A stretch of 62,890 nucleotides of DNA, counting the filler, from Octopus bimaculoides (Eukaryota), in the NCBI RefSeq assembly GCF_001194135.2. It is 5 parts of 5 records of this genome, joined end to end, with 100 filler letters (N's around TTAATTAATTAA, not from the genome) between each part and the next. Parts side by side here need not be neighbours in the genome. Positions count along the whole stretch, not along the records: positions 33,738 to 59,141 come from NC_068990.1; 4 more parts are not named here. The stretch is one strand, 5' to 3'. The stretch's first letter is position 1. Every line of letters starts with the position of its first letter. Shown here in pieces: positions 34,216 to 57,350 of this stretch. Position numbers and translations under genes: made by a program. The notes below the pieces were generated by a model that saw only the letters and a list, made by a program, of their open reading frames with translations, ran no database searches and was not told the origin of the DNA.

Positions 34216-34599
34216 ATGTACATATATAAACATAGACATATGTATACACACATACATACATACACACACATATGTATATATATGCACACATATACATATA
34301 CACACGTATGTATACATACACACACATATATATATGAGTGCATGTATGTTGATGTATATGAACATGTGCACAGAAACCTCTTTCTCTCTCTATATATATA
34401 TACATTGCACAAACACACACACCTGTCCATATGTAAGGTTACTGATATATGTGTGTGTGTGTGTGTGCGTCTGTGTGTGTGTATATAAGCATGTGTTTAC
34501 GTGTGTGCATGTGTGTGTTTGCATGTGTATGTTTGCATGTGTGCCTGTGTGTGTGTGTGTGTGTGTGCATGTGTGTGTGCATGTGTGTGTATTGGTGTC

Positions 34600-35040
34600 T
34601 GTGCATATATGGGTGTGTGTATGTGTGAGTGAGTGCTTATGGGTGCGTGTGTGTTAATGGGTGCATGTGTATGTATGTGTGTGTGCATATCTGTGCGTGT
34701 ATGCGCATGTGTTTGCATGTGTATGTATATGTGTGTACATGTGTGTGTGTGCATGTGTGTGTACATGTGTGTGTGTGCATGTGTGTGTATGGGTGTGTGT
34801 GTATGGGTGTGTGTGTATGGGTTTGTGTCTGTATGGGTGTGGGTGTGTATGGGTGTGTGTATGGGTGCGTATGTGTATGGGTGCGTGTGTGTATGGGTGT
34901 GTGTGTGTATGGGTGTGTGTGCGTATGAGTGTGTGTGTGTGTCCGTGTGCATGTGTGTGTGTGCACGTGTGTGTAAGTGCGCATGTGTGTGTGTATAGGT
35001 GTGTGAGTGTTTATGGGTGTGTGTGCATGTATGAGTGTGT
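34600..35040. repeat. (GT)-derived minisatellite with gtgtgtatgg units
   Basis: direct reading. Confidence 0.85.
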
Positions 35041-35374
35041 GTTTCTGGTTCCATTTTCTCACACTTGGTCATTTATTCTTAATGAGTGAATTACAGAGAG
35101 ACAAGTTATTGAGATTCATACGTTGCCATGTGGGAATTCTCTCAACCTGGCACTTATCTCTTTATCAGTTTTTATTTCAGTGCTTTTCATCAAAACACCT
35201 TAATTCAACTCTGCCCCTTTTTACTTAATTATCAGATAAATCTACCAGGTTCTTCTGACAAAATTACCTGGGTTCATTCAACGAAGGAAAGACTGCAATT
35301 TGAGAAAAAAGAAGGTTCTTATTATTCCGTGTTTTAACATTTCATATAATAACAGTTTCTGCTAAGACCTGAAT

Positions 35375-35790
35375 TTTTTTTTATTGTTTTACTTGCTTTA
35401 GTCATTTGACTGTGGCCATGCTGGAGCACTGCCTTTAGTCGAGCAAATCAACCCCGGGACTTATTCTTTGTAAGCCTAGTATTTATTCTATTGGTCTCTT
35501 TTGCGAAAACAAGTTACAGGGACGTACACACGCGAATATTGGTCGTCAAGCAATGATGGCGGAACAAACACAAACACATACACACACACGACAGGCTTCT
35601 TTCAGTTTCCGTCTACCAAATTCACTCACAAGGTTTCAGTCAGCCCGAGGCTATAGTAGAAGACACTTGCCCAAGGTGCCACAGAGTGGAACTGAATCCA
35701 GAACGATGTGGTTGGGAAGCAAGCTTCTTAACANNNNNNNNNNCGATGTGGTTGGGAAGCAAGCTTCTTAACACATACTCATGCCTACGC
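35375..35790 (-). mobile_element. OR/OK-type SINE, full length, antisense
   Basis: tttcagtttccgtctacc...agaagacacttgcccaaggtgcc...ggttgggaagcaagc. Confidence 0.85.
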
Positions 35791-37499: not shown

Positions 37500-37935
37500 A
37501 CAGGAGTGGCTGTGTGGTAAGTAGCTTGCTTACCAACCACATGGTCCTGGGTTCAGTCCCACTGCCTGGCACCTTGGGCAAGTGTCTTCTACTGAAGCCT
37601 CGGGCTGACCAAAGCCTTGCGAGTGGATTTGGTAGATGGAAACTGGAAGAAGCCCTTCGTATATGTATATATATATAAGTTTATGTATGTGTGTGTATAT
37701 GTTTGTATGTCTGTTTGTCCCCCCCAGCATCACTTGACAACTGATGCTGGTGTGTTTACGTCCTTGTAACTTAGCGGTTCAGCAAACCGCTTACAAAGAA
37801 TAAGCTCTGGGATCGATTTGTTCAACTATAAAGGCGATGCTCCAGCATGGCCACAGTCAAATGACTGAAACAAGTAGANNNNNNNNNNCATGGCCACAGT
37901 CAAATGACTGAAACAAGTAAAAGAATAAAAGAATA
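37500..37935 (+). mobile_element. OR/OK-type SINE
   Basis: caggagtggctgtgtggtaagtagcttgcttaccaaccacatgg head and standard tail. Confidence 0.88.
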
Positions 37936-37974: not shown

Positions 37975-38300
37975 AGCAAAGTCAACCTCGGCAGAATTTG
38001 AACTCAGAATGGAAACACAGCATTATGCCTGGCGTCTAACGATTCTGCTATCTCACCACCTTCATAATGATGACGATAGTAATAAAGATTTCTTTTTTTG
38101 GCACAAGGCCGGAAATTTCAGAGAAGGATGTAAGGTGATTACATCGAATCCCAGGGTTCAATTGGTGCTTATTTAATCAAATCTGAAAGGATGAATGACT
38201 AATTCAACCTCAGCAGAATTTGAACTCCAGACATAAGGATGCATGAAATGCTGTCAAACATTTTGCCCAGAGTGCTAATGATTCTGCCAGCTTGCCAGGC
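37975..38300 (-). mobile_element. two antisense MetaSINE-like copies
   Basis: aaagtcaacctcggcagaatttgaactcag at ~37977 and again at ~38205. Confidence 0.75.
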
Positions 38301-38302
38301 AC

Positions 38303-38795
38303 ATGCCAAAAAAGGTCACAGAAAATGAGAAAGCAACCATACTATGGGATATACCAATACACACAGATAGAGAAATTAAGGCCAATAGGTCAGATATAGT
38401 TGTCAGAGATCACGAAGAAAAAAAATGCTTTTTAATTGATGTATCAATACCAACAGATGACAATGATTCTCTAGAAGAAATGGAGAGACTTTCAAAATAC
38501 AAAGACCTGGAAATAGAGGTAACTCGAATGTGGAATCTAAAAGCAGAAACAATACCTATCAACTAGGTACGATAAAAAAAATATTCAAACAAATACATAA
38601 CAAAAACACCAGGACTTACAAATATATATAACATACAGAACATAGCACTACTGGGCACTGCACACATCCTACGCAAAACACTTCCAATACAGTAACCATA
38701 AGAGCATCACAGCAAACCACAGCACATACCCAAGGCACACAGAGCTGTGCTCGGTAGTGAAGTGAAAGCACCTGATAAAAATAAGACTACTGAAT
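38303..38795 (+). pseudogene. R4/Dong-like family A, complete RLE domain + 3' UTR
   Basis: ILWDIPIHTDREIKANRSDIVVRDHEEKKCFLIDVSIP...RLSKYKDLEIE; tail runs into (AAT)n. Confidence 0.92.
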
Positions 38796-38814
38796 AATAG
38801 TAGTTATAATAATA

Positions 38815-39119: not shown

Positions 39120-39283
39120 GTGCAGGAGTGGCTGTGTGGTAAGTAGCTTGCTTACCAACCACATGGTTCCGGGTTCAGTCCCACTGCGTGGCATCTTGGG
39201 CAAATGTCTTCTACTATAGCCTCGGGCCGACCAATGCCTTGTGAGTGGATTTGGTAGACGGAAACTGAAAGAAGCTCATTGTA

Positions 39284-39334
<51 letters not shown>

Positions 39335-39400
39335 TTGTGTGTCTGTGTTTGTCCCCCCAACACCGCTTGACAACCGATGGTGGTGTGTTTACATCCCCGT
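39120..39400 (+). mobile_element. OR/OK-type SINE, 3'-truncated
   Basis: gtgcaggagtggctgtgtggtaagtagcttgcttacc... Confidence 0.88.
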
Positions 39401-40334: not shown

Positions 40335-40505
40335 AGGCATAGGAGTGGTTGTGTTGTTATGAAGCTTGCTTCCCAACTATATAGTTTCAGGTTCAGTCCC
40401 AATGCGTAGTACTTTGGGCATATGTTTCCTACCAGAGCTCCAAGTTGACCAAAGCCTTCCGAGCAGACTTGATGGACAGAAACTGAAAGAAGCCTGTCGT
40501 ATACA
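40335..40505 (+). mobile_element. OR/OK-type SINE 5' half
   Basis: taggagtggttgtg..gaagcttgcttcccaac...gaaactgaaagaagcctgtcg. Confidence 0.8.
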
Positions 40506-40984: not shown

Positions 40985-41440
40985 ACCTGTGCCAGTGGAG
41001 CACTAACAGCACCGTCTGAGCGTGATCATTGCTAGAGCAGCTGTCTGGCTTTCATGCTAGTGGCCAGTATATAGCACCATTTGAGTGTGATCGTTACTAG
41101 TGTTGCCATACTGGCACTTGTGCTGGTGGTACATTAGAAAATCATTCGGGCAAGGTCGAGCGAGGTCGTTACCAGTGCCGCTGGACTGGCTCCTGTGCAG
41201 GTGGCACATACAAAACACCATTTTTGAGCGTGGCCATTGCCAGTACCGCCTGACTGGCCTTCGTGCCGGTGGCGCATAAAAGCACCCACTACACTCTCAG
41301 AATGGTTGGCGATAGGAAGGGCATCCAGCTGTAGAAACTCTGCCAAATCAGATTGGAGCCTGGTGCAGCCATCCGGTTCACCAGTCCTCAGTCAAATCGT
41401 CCAACCCATGCTAGCATGGAAAACAGACGTTAAATGACGA

Positions 41441-41445
<5 letters not shown>
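40985..41445 (+). mobile_element. (GAT)n-tailed SINE-like repeat with internal tandem units
   Basis: matches 595-1077. Confidence 0.85.
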
Positions 41446-41603: not shown

Positions 41604-42115
41604 ATACGGAGACAAGGAGAAAAACACGGAGAAAAAAAAATTGAATAGTGTTCAGTCAACGGTCAATCATAATATATATATATATATACGTACACACGCA
41701 CATGCACACACACCAAAAAATTTAGGAAACCAGACTCCTGATCATAAAGCTTGAGTAAGACCTTTCATCCAATTTTTTTTTAATATTTAGAATAGAAAAA
41801 CTTGAAAAATCTTTGATGCAGTATTGTATGATTTTAAAAGAATGACTTATTTTTCCATTTCAGTGGATAAATCATTAAAGTGGAAAATAATCATGGAAAA
41901 AGTCATTCTTTTTCACTTTTTCAAACACAAACACACACACAAACAAATACACACCTACATAATGCCTTATATAGATACATACATATATATATTATTATCA
42001 AGCAAGTAAACAAAGGTTGAAGTCACAAGTCAAGATGATCTTCACAATGTATTTGAGTCTCAGTACTGAATCACCCTCCATCAGAAAATGCTCACATATT
42101 AATCTGAAAAGCATT

Positions 42116-42839
42116 TTAACCCTTTTGTTACCATATTTCTGTTGAGATGCTCTGTGTTTCTTTCAATTAATTTTAAATATTACAAAGAATTTAGTAAAAT
42201 AACTTAGTTATCATTAAGCTAGTGTTAGGAACATAAATTATGACTAAAGTGTGGTGGAATATTTTAATTCAGAACTTATGAAAACAAGACATTTATACTA
42301 CAGATCCAGAGGTGATTTCAACCAGGTTGGTATCGAAAGGGTTAAAAATATCATGGTGACTTTAACTTTTTTGTTACCATATTTCTCTTGAGATGCTCTG
42401 TATTTCTTTCAATTTATTTTAAATATAACAAAGAATTTAATAAAATAACTTAGTTATCATTAAGCTAGTGTTAGGAACATAAATTGTGACTAAGGTTTGG
42501 TGGAATATTTTAATTCAGAACTTTTGAAAACAAGACATTTATACTACAGATCCAGAGGTGGTTTCAGCCGGTTTGGAATCGAAAGAGTTTAAGATATCAT
42601 GGTGACTTTAACCCTTTTGTTATCATATTTCTCTTGAGATGCTCTGTGTTTCTTTCAATTAATTTTAAATATTTTAAAAGAATTTAGTAAAATAACTTAG
42701 TTATCATTCAGCTAGTGTTAGGAACATAAATTTGTAACTAAGGTTTGGTGGAATATTTTAATTCAAAACTTATGAAAACAAGACATTTGTACAAAAGAGC
42801 CAGAGTTGGTTTCAGCTGGGTTGGTATCAAAAGGGTTAA
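42116..42839. mobile_element. head-to-tail trimer of piggyBac-like MITE family 2 with conserved spacers
   Basis: units 42120-42341, 42366-42587, 42612-42835; junctions TTAA-aaatatcatggtgact-TTAA and TTAA-gatatcatggtgact-TTAA; outer TTAA at both ends. Confidence 0.92.
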
Positions 42840-43629
42840 ACATATAAGTGTGTGTGTGTATGCATGTGTGTGTGTGTGTGTGTGTGGCATAAACAATGGG
42901 CTTTAGATATTTCTTTATTTGTGCATTTCTGACTTACAGCTGTTTCTGATATATTTTTAGGTGCATTCATTGTTCTGATTGCTCAATGTGTGTATATTGA
43001 TCAACTGAAAAATTAAATGGCCTGAACAAATGCCATCATTGTCAGAGCCCACGCACACACACACACACACACACAGTGGAGCATCACTGACCCAGTCATT
43101 GATGTTCAATAAAGAACTTTTGATAGCTCATAATAATTATGATGATGATGACGATGATAATGATGATGGTGATGATGCATTATTATTATTATGAAATAAA
43201 AACATAAATAGTAAATCTAACAATGGTGTGTGTGTTTTTAATAGTGATATACTGACTCTGCCACTTGTTTGAGACTTCTCACACACACACACACACACAC
43301 ACACACTTTCACAACTAATCACTCGCCAAACAACTGCTGCGTCTTATGAATGCTTCCCCCCCCCTTTCTGTTGTTTGGTTTCTGCTTTACTCACATTTCG
43401 ATTTTTGTTTTCTCCCAATATTTACAATGGAATTAAATGTTGAAAGAAAAAAAGGAGATGAAAAACACACCATGTCTGTTTGATTAAACACAGATCATTT
43501 CTAGCAGTCCATTTGCATGATAAACAAAAACAAACACACAAAAAAAGAAAACAAAAACAAAAAAAAAAAAGGAAAACAAACGTTGTTGGTTTTGAAAGCA
43601 AAATAAACCTTATGTGAGAGTGAACCACA

Positions 43630-43780
43630 TTTGTGGCTGTTTGGTTAAGAACTTTGCTTCAAGCCATGTGGCTTAGGGTTCACACTCACTGTGCAGAACC
43701 TTGGCCAAGTGTCTACGACGATAGCCCTGGGCTGACCAAAACCTTCTGAGTGGATTTAGGATATGGAAACCCAAAACAGT
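43630..43780 (+). mobile_element. OR/OK-type SINE 5' half
   Basis: gaactttgcttc..gccatgtgg...accttggccaagtgtct...gtggattt. Confidence 0.7.
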
Positions 43781-44069: not shown

Positions 44070-44448
44070 TTGTACCAGTGGAGCACTAAGAGCACTGTCC
44101 GAGTGTGATCATTGCCAGAGCAGCTGTCTGGCTTCCGTGCTGGTGGCATGTAAATAGCACCATTTGAGTGTGATTGTTACCAGCGTTGCCTTACTGGACT
44201 GGCTGCTGTGCAGTTGGCATGTAAAAAACACCATTTTTAGCGTTGCCATTGCCAGTACTGCCTGATTGGCCCTTGTGCCGGTGGCACGTAAAAAGCACCC
44301 ACTACACTCTCGGAGTGGTTGGCATTAGGAAGGGCATCCAGCTGTTGAAACTCTGCCAGATCAGATTGGAGTCTGGTGTAGCCATCTGGTTCACCAGTCC
44401 TCAGTCAAATCGTCCAACCCATGCTAGCATGGAAATCGGACGTTAAAC

Positions 44449-44452
<4 letters not shown>
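44070..44452 (+). mobile_element. (GAT)n-tailed SINE-like repeat
   Basis: matches 595-1077 and 40985-41445. Confidence 0.85.
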
Positions 44453-47599: not shown

Positions 47600-48046
47600 T
47601 CTTCACTTTCAGTACTAACCCTAACTTCCCCCAGCACCACCATACAACTACCACCAATACTATTATACACACTACCACCACTAATACCACAACATTATTG
47701 TCACCATCAACATCACCACAGTGGTTATTCCAACACTTCTACTATCAGTGTACTACGACCACAACCAATACTTTTTGATGGAAACAACCACTACCACCAC
47801 TAACTGTACTACTACTACTACTACTACCACCACCATTACTACTACTACTACTACCACCACCACAACCACTACCACCACCATTACTACTACTATTACTACT
47901 ACTACCACCACCACCACCATTACTACTACTATTACTACTACTACTACTACCACCACCATTACTACTACTACTACCACCACCACAACCACTACCACCACCA
48001 TTACTACTACTATTACTATTACTACTACTACCACCACCACCACCAT

Positions 48047-48082
<36 letters not shown>

Positions 48083-48159
48083 CACCACCATTACTACTAC
48101 TACTACTACTACTACTACAACCACCACTATTACTACTACTACTACTACCNNNNNNNNNN

Positions 48160-48195
<36 letters not shown>

Positions 48196-48665
48196 CACCA
48201 CCATTACTACTACTACTACTACTACTACTACAACCACCACTATTACTACTACTACTACTACCACCACCGCCACTACCACCACCACCTCTATTACCATTAC
48301 TACTATTACCACAACCATCACTGACATTACATCACTATATCCCATCACCTCATACTAACATATTTAATATGACACTACTTCCAACTATCACCACTACGAC
48401 GACAATATTATCTTCACTCTTCTGCCACTACTACTCACCACTACCACCGCCACCGCCACCACCACAACAACGACTGTACCCCCACCTTGCTGCCATCCCC
48501 ATCACACTACAGTGATACCCTGCTCTACCACCACTACTACTACGGCAGTACCTCCACCCTGCCACCCCTCATCAACCATACTACAACGTTACTCCACCAC
48601 CCACCATCTCCATCACCACAACAACAGTACTCCCCACCCCCACCCTGTTACGATAGTACCCCACC
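47600..48665. repeat. compound (ACT/ACC/ATT)n trinucleotide array
   Basis: direct reading; recurring block accaccacaaccactaccaccaccattact. Confidence 0.9.
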
Positions 48666-49329
48666 NNNNNNNNNNNNNNNNNNNNNNNNNNNNNNNNNNN
48701 NNNNNNNNNNNNNNNNNNNNNNNNNNNNNNNNNNNNNNNNNNNNNNNNNNNNNNNNNNNNNNNNNNNNNNNNNNNNNNNNNNNNNNNNNNNNNNNNNNNN
48801 NNNNNNNNNNNNNNNNNNNNNNNNNNNNNNNNNNNNNNNNNNNNNNNNNACTATTTATTATTTATTTATTTGCCCTGTTTCTGCCTTTTTTGTTTTTTTA
48901 AAAAATCAATTTGAATTAAAGATGACAACAGTGGGAACTGTTAACATTGTTTAGTGGAGTCAAACATTAGTAAACAACAACTACTACTACTACTACTACT
49001 ACTGCGCCTACTACTACTACTACTACTACTACTATTACTACTACTACTACTACTGCTACTACTACTACTACTACCACTGCTTCTACTATTACTACTACTA
49101 CTACTGCTCCTACTATTGCTACTACTACTACTACTGCTCCTCCTCCTCCTCCTCCTCCTCCTACTACTACTGCTGCTGCTGCTGCTCCTACTACTACTAC
49201 TACTACTACTACTATTTACAAGAGTAATGGCATCATCATCATTATCACCATGATAGACATCAACTGCAGCAGCCATTACCACCACCACCACCACCATCAC
49301 CATCATCATCATCATATGCAATAATAACA

Positions 49330-49699: not shown

Positions 49700-50060
49700 C
49701 CACACACACACACACACACACACACAAGATGTATATAAACACATAAGATACACACATACACACACACACAAGATGTATATAAACACATAAGATACACACA
49801 TACACACAAAAGATGTTTATAAACACATAAGATACATACACACACACACAAGATGTGTATAAATACATGCACACACACACACACACACACAAAATGTAAA
49901 TAAATGCATGCACACACACACACACACAAGATGTATATAAACACATAAGATATACACACACAAGATGTGTATACACACATGCACATCTACACAAACATAA
50001 AATGTAAATAAATACATGAACACACACACAAGATGTATATAAACAACATAAGATGCACAC
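49700..50060. repeat. ~40-bp minisatellite (acacaagatgtatataaacacataagat)
   Basis: about 8 variable units. Confidence 0.85.
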
Positions 50061-50384
50061 ACACACACACACACACATAAACATCTACAGACAGATGCAT
50101 AAATAAACATATTCCTGTACACATAGACACACACACAAACATCTTGCATATACACACACAATGTCCTCACACACACACACACACAGACGGCTTACGCATG
50201 CACACCAACACATGCAGACATGCATAAATATGCAGACATTCCATGCATACAAAACATTTTCATCTGCACAAACACACGCACACACTGTCACTAATACATA
50301 TATGCACAAGCACACACACACACATACACAGGCAAATACATAAACACACATGCACACGCACAAAAATACACATGCATACACACA

Positions 50385-50640: not shown

Positions 50641-51699
50641 ACACACACACATTTTCATGCTTGATTGATTAATTTTTGAATATTTTGATTTGTTGTTAGT
50701 GTTGTTTATGCTTGAGATGATTGGGGTGGTGGTGGTGGTGGAAGTGGTGGTGGTGGTGGTGGTGGTGGTGGTGNNNNNNNNNNNNNNNNNNNNNNNNNNN
50801 NNNNNNNNNNNNNNNNNNNNNNNNNNNNNNNNNNNNNNNNNNNNNNNNNNNNNNNNNNNNNNNNNNNNNNNNNNNNNNNNNNNNNNNNNNNNNNNNNNNN
50901 NNNNNNNNNNNNNNNNNNNNNNNNNNNNNNNNNNNNNNNNNNNNNNNNNNNNNNNNNNNNNNNNNNNNNNNNNNNNNNNNNNNNNNNNNNNNNNNNNNNN
51001 NNNNNNNNNNNNNNNNNNNNNNNNNNNNNNNNNNNNNNNNNNNNNNNNNNNNNNNNNNNNNNNNNNNNNNNNNNNNNNNNNNNNNNNNNNNNNNNNNNNN
51101 NNNNNNNNNNNNNNNNNNNNNNNNNNNNNNNNNNNNNNNNNNNNNNNNNNNNNNNNNNNNNNNNNNNNNNNNNNNNNNNNNNNNNNNNNNNNNNNNNNNN
51201 NNNNNNNNNNNNNNNNNNNNNNNNNNNNNNNNNNNNNNNNNNNNNNNNNNNNNNNNNNNNNNNNNNNNNNNNNNNNNNNNNNNNNNNNNNNNNNNNNNNN
51301 NNNNNNNNNNNNNNNNNNNNNNNNNNNNNNNNNNNNNNNNNNNNNNNNNNNNNNNNNNNNNNNNNNNNNNNNNNNNNNNNNNNNNNNNNNNNNNNNNNNN
51401 NNNNNNNNNNNNNNNNNNNNNNNNNNNNNNNNNNNNNNNNNNNNNNNNNNNNNNNNNNNNNNNNNNNNNNNNNNNNNNNNNNNNNNNNNNNNNNNNNNNN
51501 NNNNNNNNNNNNNNNNNNNNNNNNNNNNNNNNNNNNNNNNNNNNNNNNNNNNNNNNNNNNNNNNNNNNNNNNNNNNNNNNNNNNNNNNNNNNNNNNNNNN
51601 NNNNNNNNNNNNNNNNNNNNNNNNNNNNNNNNNNNNNNNNNNNNNNNNNNNNNNNNNNNNNNNNNNNNATTATTATTAATATTATTATTATTATTATTA

Positions 51700-51733
<34 letters not shown>

Positions 51734-52180
51734 CACTATCATCGTTATTATTATTATTATTAATATTATTATTATTATCATCATTCTCATTCTCGTTATT
51801 ATTATTATTATTATTATTAATATTATTATTATTATTATCATCATTCTCATTCTCGTTATTATTATTATTATTATTAATATTATTATTATTATTATTATTA
51901 TCATCATCATCGTTATTATTATTAGTATCGTCATTATTATTATTATTATTATCATTATTGTTATTATTATTATTATTGTTGTTGTAAACTTTATCCCTTG
52001 TTCGATGATTAACTAATGACTGTAAGGAAGCTTAGGAAATTTTCCAGGAGGTTTGTTAGTATCGCAGTTGTTGTCCATATTACTGTTGTGGTTATTGTAG
52101 CTGTTTGTTGTTGTTTGTTGTTGTTTTTATCTTCATATTTGCTTAGGAAACCAATATCATTATTTATAATCTCTGCAATG

Positions 52181-53470: not shown

Positions 53471-54006
53471 NCAATACCAGCAGATGACAACGTTTCTCTA
53501 AAAGAAATGGAAAAACTTTCAAAATACAAAGACCTGGAAATAGAGATAACTCGAATGTGGAATCTAAAAACAGAAACAATTCCTATCATAGTAGGTGCCT
53601 TAGGTATAATAAAAAAATATTCAGACAAATACATAACAAAAACACCAGGACTTACAAATATATATAACATACAGAAAATTGCACTACTGGGTACTGCACA
53701 CATTCTACGCAAAACACTTTCAATACAGTAAACATAAGAGCATCACAGCAAACCACAGCACATACCCAAGGCGCACAGAGCTGCGCTCGGTAGTGAAGTG
53801 AAAGCACGTTATAAAAATAAGACTAATGAATAATAATAATAATAACACAGAAAATTGCACTACTGGGTACTGCACACATTCTATGCAAAACACTTTCAAT
53901 ACAGTAAACATAAGAGCACCACAGCAAACCACAGCACATACCCAAGGCGCACAGAGCTGCGCTCGGTAGTGAAGTGAAAGCACGTTATAAAAATAAAACT
54001 ACTGAA
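53471..54006 (+). mobile_element. two stacked family A R4/Dong-like 3' ends (53471-53830, 53847-54006)
   Basis: EKLSKYKDLEIEITRMWNLKTETIPIIVGALG...KTLSIQ*, then (AAT)n and a shorter, slightly different copy. Confidence 0.88.
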
Positions 54007-54200
54007 TAATAATAATAGTAAATAATGATAACGGTTTCTTTATTAACCATGAGGGTTTACATGAAGGAAAACATTATGGACAGCACAGGACAGAATAAAA
54101 AATATGTGTGTGTATGTATGTGTGTGAGTGCATGTATGTGTGTGAGAGTTTTACTTGTAAACGAGACTAATAAAGTTTTAAAAAAAGAGATCAACAATAT

Positions 54201-54659: not shown

Positions 54660-55000
54660 AAATGTGGCCATGCTGGAGCACTGCCTTGAATTTTTAGTTG
54701 AACAAATCAAACCCAGTAATTTTTTAAATTTTTTTCGTTTTTAAGCCTCGTTCTTATTCTATCAGTCTCTTTTGCTGGACTGTTAAGTTATGGGAGTGCA
54801 AACAAGCCAACACTGGTTGTGAAGCAGTGTAGCAGGACACACACACACACACACACAGGATGGGTTTCTTTCAGTTTCCGTCTACCAGATCCACTCACAA
54901 GGCTTTGGTCAGCCCAAATCTATAGTAAAAGGCACTTGACCAAGGTACCATGCAGTGAGATTGAACTTGTTACCAAGCTTCTTACCACACAGCCTCACTC
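54660..55000 (-). mobile_element. OR/OK-type SINE, antisense
   Basis: tgtggccatgctggagcactgcc...ttcagtttccgtctaccagatccactcacaaggc. Confidence 0.8.
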
Positions 55001-55290: not shown

Positions 55291-55426
55291 TTATTATTAT
55301 TATTGTTCAGTAGTTTTATTTTTATAATGTGCTTTCACTTCACTACCGAGCGCAGCTCTGTGCGCCTTGGGTATGTGCTGTGGTTTGCTGTGGTGCTCTT
55401 ATGTTTACTGTATTGAAAGTGTTTTG
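55291..55426 (-). mobile_element. R4/Dong-like family A 3' tip inserted in that (ATT)n
   Basis: gttcagtagttttatttttata..gtgctttcacttcactaccgagcgc. Confidence 0.85.
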
Positions 55427-56053: not shown

Positions 56054-56445
56054 AAGCCAAACATAGTGTTGAGAAAGAAAGCAAACTATGCTGGATCATA
56101 GATATAGCATGCCCAGCTGACAACAAGGTATGCGATAAGGAAGAAAGAAAAGTCGACAGATATGACAGGTTAGCTTGGGAAGTTAAGCAGTTGTGGTCCA
56201 TGGAAAAGGTGTTGGTTGTACCAATAATTGTCGGAGCCCTGGAAACAGTGAGTAAAAATCTTGAGATGCACGTGGAACAAATAAGGGCTGCAATAAGGGT
56301 GGAGCACTTGCAGAAAACAGCACTGCTTGGAACTGCTCAAATACTCAGGAAAGTGCTTGAAAAATGAGAGGTGTTACCTTAGTTCACTGGTAGAGAACAG
56401 CTGACACTGTAGTACATCTCCAGTGTTAGAAGCTGTGCAAAGGCA
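56054..56445 (+). pseudogene. R4/Dong-like RLE domain, family H
   Basis: LCWIIDIACPADNKVCDKEERKVDRYDRLAWEVKQLWSMEKVLVVPIIVGALE...LQKTALLGTAQILRKVLEK*; (AAT)n on both sides. Confidence 0.88.
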
Positions 56446-56834
56446 ATAATAATAATAATAATAAAAAGAAGAAGAAGAAGAAGACGAAGAAGAAGAAGAC
56501 GAAGTACGAGTGGAAGTACAGCAGTTGATTTAATCAACTGCACCCCTTTTCTTTCCAATAAACTGTGTCCTTGGGGGACAACTTAAGAAATCATTACAAC
56601 TACTACTAATATTACTCCTACTACTACTGTGTATTTCCAATAATTGCCATTGCATCACCAGGTGTGTCTCTATTTTCTGGAAGGAGGTTGGTGCATTGAG
56701 AAAAAGAGGGCAAAGTCGTTTAGTGTGTTAGGTTTTAATTAAATTTGATGTGTCGTGGGGTTGGTTTTTACCATTTCTGGTTTAATTCGTTTTGCTTATT
56801 GTATAGAATATGTGTGGTTGTGTGTGAGATGTGC

Positions 56835-57350
56835 TGGAAGAGGAACTTGGCTCATGACCATAAGGTTGTGAGTTCGAATCCCGGTGATGCGTTGTGTCCT
56901 TGATATTTCATGTTGCTCCAGTCCCCTCGGCTGACAAAAGTGATGTGTACTTGTAATTCAGCCGGGTTGGTATCGAAAGGGTTAAAAATATCATGGTGAC
57001 TTTAACCCTTTTGTTTCCATATTTCTGTTGAGGTGCTCTGTGGTTCTTTCAATTAATTTTAAATGTAACAAAGAATTTAGTAAAATAATTTAGTTATCAT
57101 TCAGCTTGTGTTAGGAACATAAATTATGACTAAAGTTTGGTGGAATATTTTAATTCAGAACTTTTAAAAAGCAGACATTTGTATTCAGAGCCAGAGCCGG
57201 TTTCAGGCAGGTTGGTATGAAAAGGGTTAAGGGTACACATCCATGAAGTGCTCAACCACTTGCATGTTAATTTCATGAGTAGGGTGTTCCATTAATTGGG
57301 TCAATTGGAACCCTCGTTATCATAACCGATGGAGTGCCAGTTATAGTGTC
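56835..57350 (+). mobile_element. tRNA-SINE interrupted by piggyBac-like MITE family 2 (remnant + spacer + full unit 57006-57226)
   Basis: SINE 5' part ends gtacttgtaattca; resumes TTAA|gggtacac as in intact copy 61663-61674. Confidence 0.85.

Follow-up and report, generated by a model that had tools for sequence, protein, structure and literature searches.

A tandem array of TTAA-type MITE units in Octopus bimaculoides and the recurrence of its 16-bp spacer at a second locus

A tandem array in the genome of Octopus bimaculoides (assembly GCF_001194135.2) is made of three copies of an element which, judged by its structure, is a piggyBac-type MITE. Neighbouring copies are joined by TTAA, a conserved 16-bp spacer and another TTAA, and the same junction is found again at a second locus, whose flanks are unrelated to those of the first and whose right border falls exactly at the end of the element. 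The account that we prefer, and to which we would assign a probability of roughly 40%, is that a TTAA-type MITE was duplicated in tandem together with a part of its flank, multiplied by unequal exchange and relocated to the second locus, which was later truncated. The analysis covers a 25-kb piece (positions 33738-59141, derived from NC_068990.1) of the window, that is, of the whole stretch of 62,890 nucleotides under study, and its evidence base consists of two loci lying 14 kb apart on the same draft contig (Table 1).

In the output of Tandem Repeats Finder, positions 42115-42845 form a single array with a period of 246, 3.0 copies, 90% matches and no indels. When the sequence is read directly, locus 1 (42116-42839) resolves into three head-to-tail units of 222, 222 and 224 bp, with pairwise identities of 89.6-92.3%, and the 246-bp repeating block proves to be TTAA + MITE + TTAA + 16 bp. 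The trimer of approximately 222-bp units joined by TTAA-spacer-TTAA, which had been proposed in an earlier note on this DNA, is thus confirmed by both approaches, with a slightly longer unit 3. Three copies of the 30-base junction of this block were found in the piece, at 42339, 42585 and 56979, with 0 expected by chance. The spacer had been described as conserved and 15-16 bp long; its conservation stands, while the variation in length does not, as by homology it is constantly 16 bp, and the literal TTAA string is shifted by one base in junction 2 because of a single A-to-T substitution (TTTA). To the left of locus 1 the flank reads ...AAAAGCATT and is followed by the outer TTAA.

Table 1. 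Features of the two loci carrying the MITE units (positions count along the window)
Feature	Position	Strand	Basis
Locus 1, outer left TTAA of the trimer, putative target-site copy	42116..42119	+	sequence reading
Locus 1, MITE unit 1, 222 bp, CCCTTTTGTTACCA...TGGTATCGAAAGGG; nearest the consensus, 3 private changes	42120..42341	+	
Locus 1, junction 1: TTAA (42342-42345) + 16-bp spacer AAATATCATGGTGACT (42346-42361) + TTAA (42362-42365)	42342..42365	+	
Locus 1, MITE unit 2, 222 bp; both ends mutated (CTT..., ...GAG)	42366..42587	+	
Locus 1, junction 2: TTTA (mutated TTAA, 42588-42591) + spacer AGATATCATGGTGACT (42592-42607) + TTAA (42608-42611)	42588..42611	+	
Locus 1, MITE unit 3, 224 bp (two 1-bp insertions); CCC...GGG ends intact	42612..42835	+	
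Locus 1, outer right TTAA of the trimer	42836..42839	+	
Locus 1, right flank ACATATAAGTGTGTGT, 10/16 match to the spacer; may be what is left of a fourth spacer, decayed and invaded by the neighbouring (GT)n microsatellite	42840..42855	+	
Locus 2, last 25 nt of a MITE unit (TTCAGCCGGGTTGGTATCGAAAGGG), remainder of the unit missing	56957..56981	+	
Locus 2, junction: TTAA + AAATATCATGGTGACT + TTAA, identical to junction 1	56982..57005	+	30-base query, 0 mismatches
Locus 2, full MITE unit, 221 bp, 86.4-89.6% identical to units 1-3	57006..57226	+	
Locus 2, outer right TTAA, directly after GGG; then GGGTACACATCC..., unrelated to the spacer (2/16) and to the locus 1 flanks	57227..57230	+	

The unit itself is, structurally, a piggyBac-type MITE, non-coding and non-autonomous, its mobility being read from this structure. 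A TTAA duplication and a CC[C/T]T terminal motif are hallmarks of piggyBac elements (PMC2872659). The unit ends, CCCTTTTGTTACCA and TGGTATCGAAAGGG (CCCT...AGGG), form a 14-bp terminal inverted repeat, complementary at 12/14 positions in unit 1, whose consensus is CCCTTTYGWTACCA (the termini can also be written as CCCTTTTGTTACC). A search of the piece for the terminus TTAACCCTTTYGWTACC with at most three mismatches returned 9 matches against 0.3 expected; all nine are unit ends at the two loci, read TTAA + CCCTTT, and leave no further TTAACCCTTTYGWTACC terminus in the piece beyond these loci. TTAA, the putative target-site duplication, stands at 42116, 42342, 42362, 42608, 42836, 56982, 57002 and 57227, and is mutated to TTTA at 42588. 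In the DNA fold the unit ends pair with each other, and the body does not form a long hairpin (z = -1.7). The longest open frame found in units of this size (221-224 bp) has 47 aa, crosses a junction and is without a homologue among 5.8 billion proteins. No ORF of the 25-kb piece contains a Pfam domain, that of a transposase included, and there is therefore no transposase nearby. Taken together, TTAA on both sides, the CCCT...AGGG termini, the inverted repeat, the length of 222 bp and the lack of coding capacity bear out the identification as a piggyBac-like MITE. The two loci within the 25 kb together contain four full units and one fragment. All copies are 8-14% diverged and are probably immobile relics; nothing points to a host function, and no host consequence is evident.

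A conserved 20-mer of the unit had 0 matches in viral contigs and 4 in metagenome contigs, the latter being, by BLAST, chance matches of 20-27 nt, and a conserved 22-mer had 0 matches in 185,579 prokaryote genomes. The junction sequence likewise had 0 matches in viral contigs, and three diagnostic strings were found neither in the literature searched nor in the supplement of the Octopus vulgaris repeat paper.

The second locus (56957-57230) has a right end that coincides with an element end and a left edge that lies inside a unit. When 400-660 bp of each flank of both loci were compared with the piece by BLAST, no similarity was found between the loci and no paralogue of any flank elsewhere in the piece. 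The flanks being unrelated, a segmental duplication with shared flanks, which the earlier note had set against its own reading, does not appear within the piece. As an identical spacer cannot have arisen twice, the block of MITE, spacer and MITE was formed once and now stands in two contexts. Three of the four outer boundaries lie exactly at a TTAA next to CCC or GGG, each of which would be a coincidence of about 1 in 246 for a plain 246-bp tandem repeat. The sequence at the right boundary of locus 2 argues that this boundary was made by a transposase rather than at an arbitrary duplication breakpoint, and it hints that a multi-unit block may have been relocated.

The surroundings of locus 2 offer a possible view of the insertion site. 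Its two flanks (56826-56956 and 57227-57345) look like what we take to be the head and body of one tRNA-derived SINE, presumably resembling an abundant octopus SINE that contains GTTAAGGGTACAC. A B-box-like GGTTGTGAGTTCGAATCCC is present at ~56866-56884, and the right flank begins with TTAAGGGTACAC. If both flanks are one SINE, the MITE block would have inserted into the SINE's own TTAA, and if so, a later deletion, possibly at a shared TTCA, would have taken about 60 nt of the SINE together with most of the left MITE. A second copy of this SINE was not found in the piece; its read-through peptide had no protein matches, and a degenerate DNA pattern derived from it was absent from prokaryote and viral contigs.

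Changes at the ends of unit 2 (CCC to CTT and GGG to GAG) had been noticed before, and they are real; the adjoining TTAA is changed as well, to TTTA. The altered ends had been taken as part of a contrast between damaged inner and intact outer ends, as if only the outer ends were used, and this contrast did not reach significance. In the trimer, changes amount to 6/72 at inner versus 0/36 at outer ends (Fisher p=0.08), and with locus 2 included they amount to 7/90 versus 1/54 (Fisher p=0.13). The excess is confined to unit 2; elsewhere, at the two remaining inner ends of the trimer and at that of locus 2, there is no change or a single one. Unit 2 shows 9 private changes with respect to the four-unit consensus, of which 5 lie in the terminal 18+18 columns (a comparison chosen post hoc; binomial p=0.0065). 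For all units together, 8/38 private changes fall in terminal columns (p=0.23), and with unit 2 excluded 3/29 do. We give the inner-versus-outer argument little weight, because a fixed copy at ~10% divergence is under no selection for its ends.

Sites at which the four units are divided two against two support all three groupings (4, 4 and 2 sites), and they are interleaved along the unit. The units are related in a star-like or mosaic manner, which exchange between repeats would lead one to expect, and no simple duplication or single-crossover history is visible. The idea that unit 2 is a single-crossover recombinant of units 3 and 1 was considered and found to be unsupported, since the informative sites are interleaved.

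The sequence to the right of the trimer bears on where the spacer came from. The first 16 nt beyond the outer right TTAA (ACATATAAGTGTGTGT) agree with the spacer at 10 of 16 positions (binomial p=0.006), a match that was noticed after the fact; against 232 other 16-mers following a TTAA in the piece, ACATATAAGTGTGTGT is the only one to reach 10 matches. The array called by Tandem Repeats Finder extends 6 nt beyond this outer TTAA, and the second half of ACATATAAGTGTGTGT runs into a (GT)n microsatellite. A transposase preference for A-rich DNA after TTAA may explain part of the match. Clean outer ends had been claimed for the trimer, and this holds as far as the presence of the outer TTAAs is concerned, not for the right end with its spacer-like continuation. 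A derivation of the spacer from the MITE itself was also tried and rejected, as local alignment of the two was no better than that of shuffles (p=0.94).

From this anatomy we infer a part for a transposase, an order of events and a source of the spacer as follows. A piggyBac-family transposase, encoded elsewhere in the genome, would bind the 14-bp inverted repeats, cut at the flanking TTAA and insert the element into another TTAA. One such MITE insertion would have been duplicated in tandem at or near locus 1, and its target-site copy and the 16 bp next to it on the right would have been carried along; the duplication may have come about by replication slippage or by unequal exchange between two T-TTAA motifs 246 bp apart. 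Two copies could then have become three via unequal exchange between the 222-bp repeats. A multi-unit block would have been relocated by 14 kb to locus 2 if the transposase brought together the left end of one unit and the right end of another further along, and a later deletion at locus 2 would have removed most of the left unit.

It is also possible that the first step was a double insertion, in which two MITEs of the same orientation entered TTAA sites 16 bp apart at an ancestral locus, with the resulting dimer moving by its outermost ends and the trimer arising by unequal exchange. Such a history would explain the exact TTAA-CCC and GGG-TTAA junctions that flank the spacer, as these are what transposase-made ends would look like; it also agrees with the finding of one spacer at two loci that differ in their flanks, and with the exact right end of locus 2. 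Moreover, double insertion has been documented, together with unequal exchange, for P-element and hobo dimers and for R1 units separated by identical 33-nt target duplications (PMC5932611). On the other hand, it does not predict the 10/16 spacer-like match after the outer TTAA of the trimer, and the support that it might draw from inner decay is not significant (the two Fisher tests above) and comes from an excess in unit 2 only. The spacer-like right flank is explained by a tandem duplication of TTAA-MITE-TTAA-16 bp flank no less well than by double insertion. The clean end of locus 2 at a TTAA without spacer-like sequence (2/16) and the mosaic of variants shared among the four units count against the account that we prefer. 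We thus lean slightly towards a tandem duplication of MITE and flank, with double insertion at neighbouring TTAA sites close behind. Of the earlier proposal that the spacer is DNA captured at such a locus, the conserved spacer and its common junction at two loci stand, and its origin by two insertions 16 bp apart is not established. A bolder version of events would make the MITE-TTAA-16 bp-TTAA-MITE block itself the mobile unit, with non-adjacent ends routinely paired and dimers and trimers scattered at many TTAA sites, where they would seed a young satellite. We consider this version unlikely. Of the features of a composite transposon moved by its outermost ends, the piece shows the common junction in two unrelated contexts and the exact right end of locus 2; against them stand the truncation of locus 2 on its left and the likeness of the right flank of locus 1 to the spacer. 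With two loci only, the block may be called a candidate composite.

Two further explanations dispense with a moving block. Segmental duplication, ectopic repair or a fault in the assembly could have copied, at the level of DNA, a part of locus 1 to locus 2 or a part of locus 2 to locus 1, the trimer being a local tandem duplication around an old MITE. The two loci do lie 14 kb apart in the same orientation on one gap-ridden draft contig, and the left edge of locus 2 falls within a unit, as such copying would allow. We nevertheless find it improbable, given that the right edge of locus 2 is exactly GGG-TTAA (about 1 in 246 for an arbitrary breakpoint), that the flanks of the two loci share nothing on either side and that no run of N lies within or adjoins either locus. 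The locus 2 unit also differs by 10-14% from every unit of locus 1, and therefore locus 2 is neither a recent copy nor an assembler's duplication. Finally, the array might not be a transposon at all and could represent a common tandem repeat of 246 bp, a satellite in the making, or a bivalve-type repeat-bearing element, in which TTAA and CCC/GGG would be incidental. Its regular 246-bp period with no indels and a folding z-score of just -1.7 would be in line with this, and the MITE-like elements for which molluscs are known, with satellite-like repeats inside them, count in the same direction. Bivalve elements of the pearl/CvA/DTC84 type are short, non-coding and mobile, contain one to few satellite-like repeats and have been proposed as seeds of satellite DNA; their repeats lie between conserved left and right modules, and they are not known to be bounded by TTAA/CCC...GGG. 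Unlike in these elements and in Helentron-associated repeats, the two octopus loci share no flanking modules by BLAST against the piece, although a bivalve-type element would require them on the left and on the right. The array boundaries, furthermore, coincide with inverted-repeat ends at 3/4 outer edges, and the 12/14 terminal inverted repeat carries the piggyBac CCCT motif, so that we regard a non-transposon origin as very improbable.

The piece contains several other repeats, which we describe here as observations in their own right. A SINE-like family of ~150 nt is represented by at least 6 copies in both orientations, with 70-85% identity (35566-35733, 37515-37682, 39137-39292, 40355-40500, 43678-43775 and 54849-54975). 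Several of these copies run directly into (TA)n(TG)n microsatellites, e.g. at 39263-39352, which suggests that the tail of the SINE-like element seeds microsatellites. Another repeated element (41060-41434 and 44112-44443) includes a 68-bp x 1.9 internal duplication at 41158-41286, and both of its copies end in ...GACGTTAAA(T/C)GA(C/T)GA followed by a microsatellite, (AT)17 at 41443 and (GA)23 at 44452. Microsatellite density over 33738-59141 is extreme in general, with (TAC)n of ~150 units at 47807-48261, (ATT)n of ~100 at 51669-51977 and (ACT)n of 78 at 48980-49214, accompanied by a TG-rich 600-bp block (34450-35042) and 40-bp minisatellites (49705-50067). The many runs of N in this region indicate a short-read draft assembly. 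Rfam and tRNA scans of the piece returned low-complexity noise only, all Rfam "miRNA" matches being far below gathering scores.

A retroelement is also represented in the piece. Open-frame fragments at 56056-56364 (+) and 38282-38563 (+) correspond to the same C-terminal region of this retroelement, without a Pfam domain. A 176-bp sequence occurs as two tandem copies (97% identical) within 53671-54021, as an inverted copy 1.3 kb away (98% complementary; 55291-55426) and as a further copy (91%) at 38674-38814. Two of these copies adjoin the ORF fragments just mentioned, N gaps interrupt the region, and the 176-bp sequence probably represents the terminal repeats of a retroelement. The ORF at 56056-56364 has 24 homologues, the best with 77% amino acid identity, all in ENA assemblies and located downstream of RVT_1 reverse-transcriptase ORFs. 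Their contigs are 1-9 Mb long with 88-278x coverage in the metagenome assemblies ERZ25066843 and ERZ25066847, and they are evidently host DNA. Six homologue loci (~100 kb) have only the ORF in common with the piece, at 75-78% nucleotide identity; as the MITE, the SINEs and the other repeats of the piece are absent from them, these loci come from other species.

Several repeats in the piece resemble what we take to be abundant octopus SINEs. If this resemblance is right, the unit divergence of 8-14% would sit near the expansion of DNA transposons seen in Octopus vulgaris at a Jukes-Cantor distance of 0.09 (PMC13282606), which we regard as a lead only. In that species piggyBac families are still active (PMC13282606).

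Arrays of this general kind have been described before. Wang et al. 2010 (PLoS One, PMC2872659) reported Acropora CMITEs, piggyBac-like MITEs that occur in tandem arrays of full-length elements, with some gaps conserved within an array, and attributed these arrays to replication slippage. The octopus array resembles them in being composed of a piggyBac-like MITE with a TTAA duplication and CC[C/T]T termini, and in its tandem full-length elements with conserved gaps. This likeness is one of structure. The octopus array differs in that the host is another one and CMITEs are defined by a conserved internal region; moreover, the same gap sequence at separate loci with different flanks, as seen here, is not described in that work. 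Xenopus Xstir (Hikosaka and Kawahara 2004, as cited in PMC2872659) likewise forms tandem arrays derived from a piggyBac-type MITE, but in the form in which it is summarized there the repeated part is a partial internal segment, whereas in the octopus whole elements with both ends and TTAA are repeated.

McGurk and Barbash 2018 (Genome Res, PMC5932611) used population data to describe how double insertion leads to transposon dimers with target-derived junction sequence, which expand by unequal exchange and provide a route to satellites; their examples include dimers of P-element, hobo and jockey, besides the R1 units already mentioned. The octopus array shares with these tandems the head-to-tail arrangement of whole transposons, the target-derived sequence kept in the junction and the expansion by unequal exchange, as far as our reading of its history goes. 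In those tandems, however, the junction is normally the target-site duplication of one shared site, while here it is TTAA + 16 bp + TTAA and thus needs either two neighbouring sites or a duplicated flank. Satellites count tens to thousands of head-to-tail units, usually at several loci, far more than the 3.0 copies at locus 1 and ~1.1 at locus 2. A route from MITE to satellite, which the earlier note had suggested, is a published concept (PMC5932611, PMC2872659) that an array of only three copies does not establish. The literature already contains full-length piggyBac-like MITEs arrayed in tandem with conserved gaps, and also double insertion as a way to satellites; the main difference of the present case is that one spacer is found at two loci with different flanks.

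The value of this finding lies mainly in annotation, as what is called a 246-bp "tandem repeat" consists of three copies of a TTAA-type MITE and is not an independent satellite. If the block spreads as a whole, nature would here offer a clear example of how a family of cut-and-paste transposons becomes one of tandem repeats, in which the 16-bp spacer would serve as a built-in marker tracing every descendant of one founding event. Such an example would help in deciding whether double insertion or slippage comes first on the way from transposon to satellite. Should the reading in which blocks move to many sites be true, a transposase-driven step from MITE to satellite would have been caught in the act, rather than a purely local duplication.
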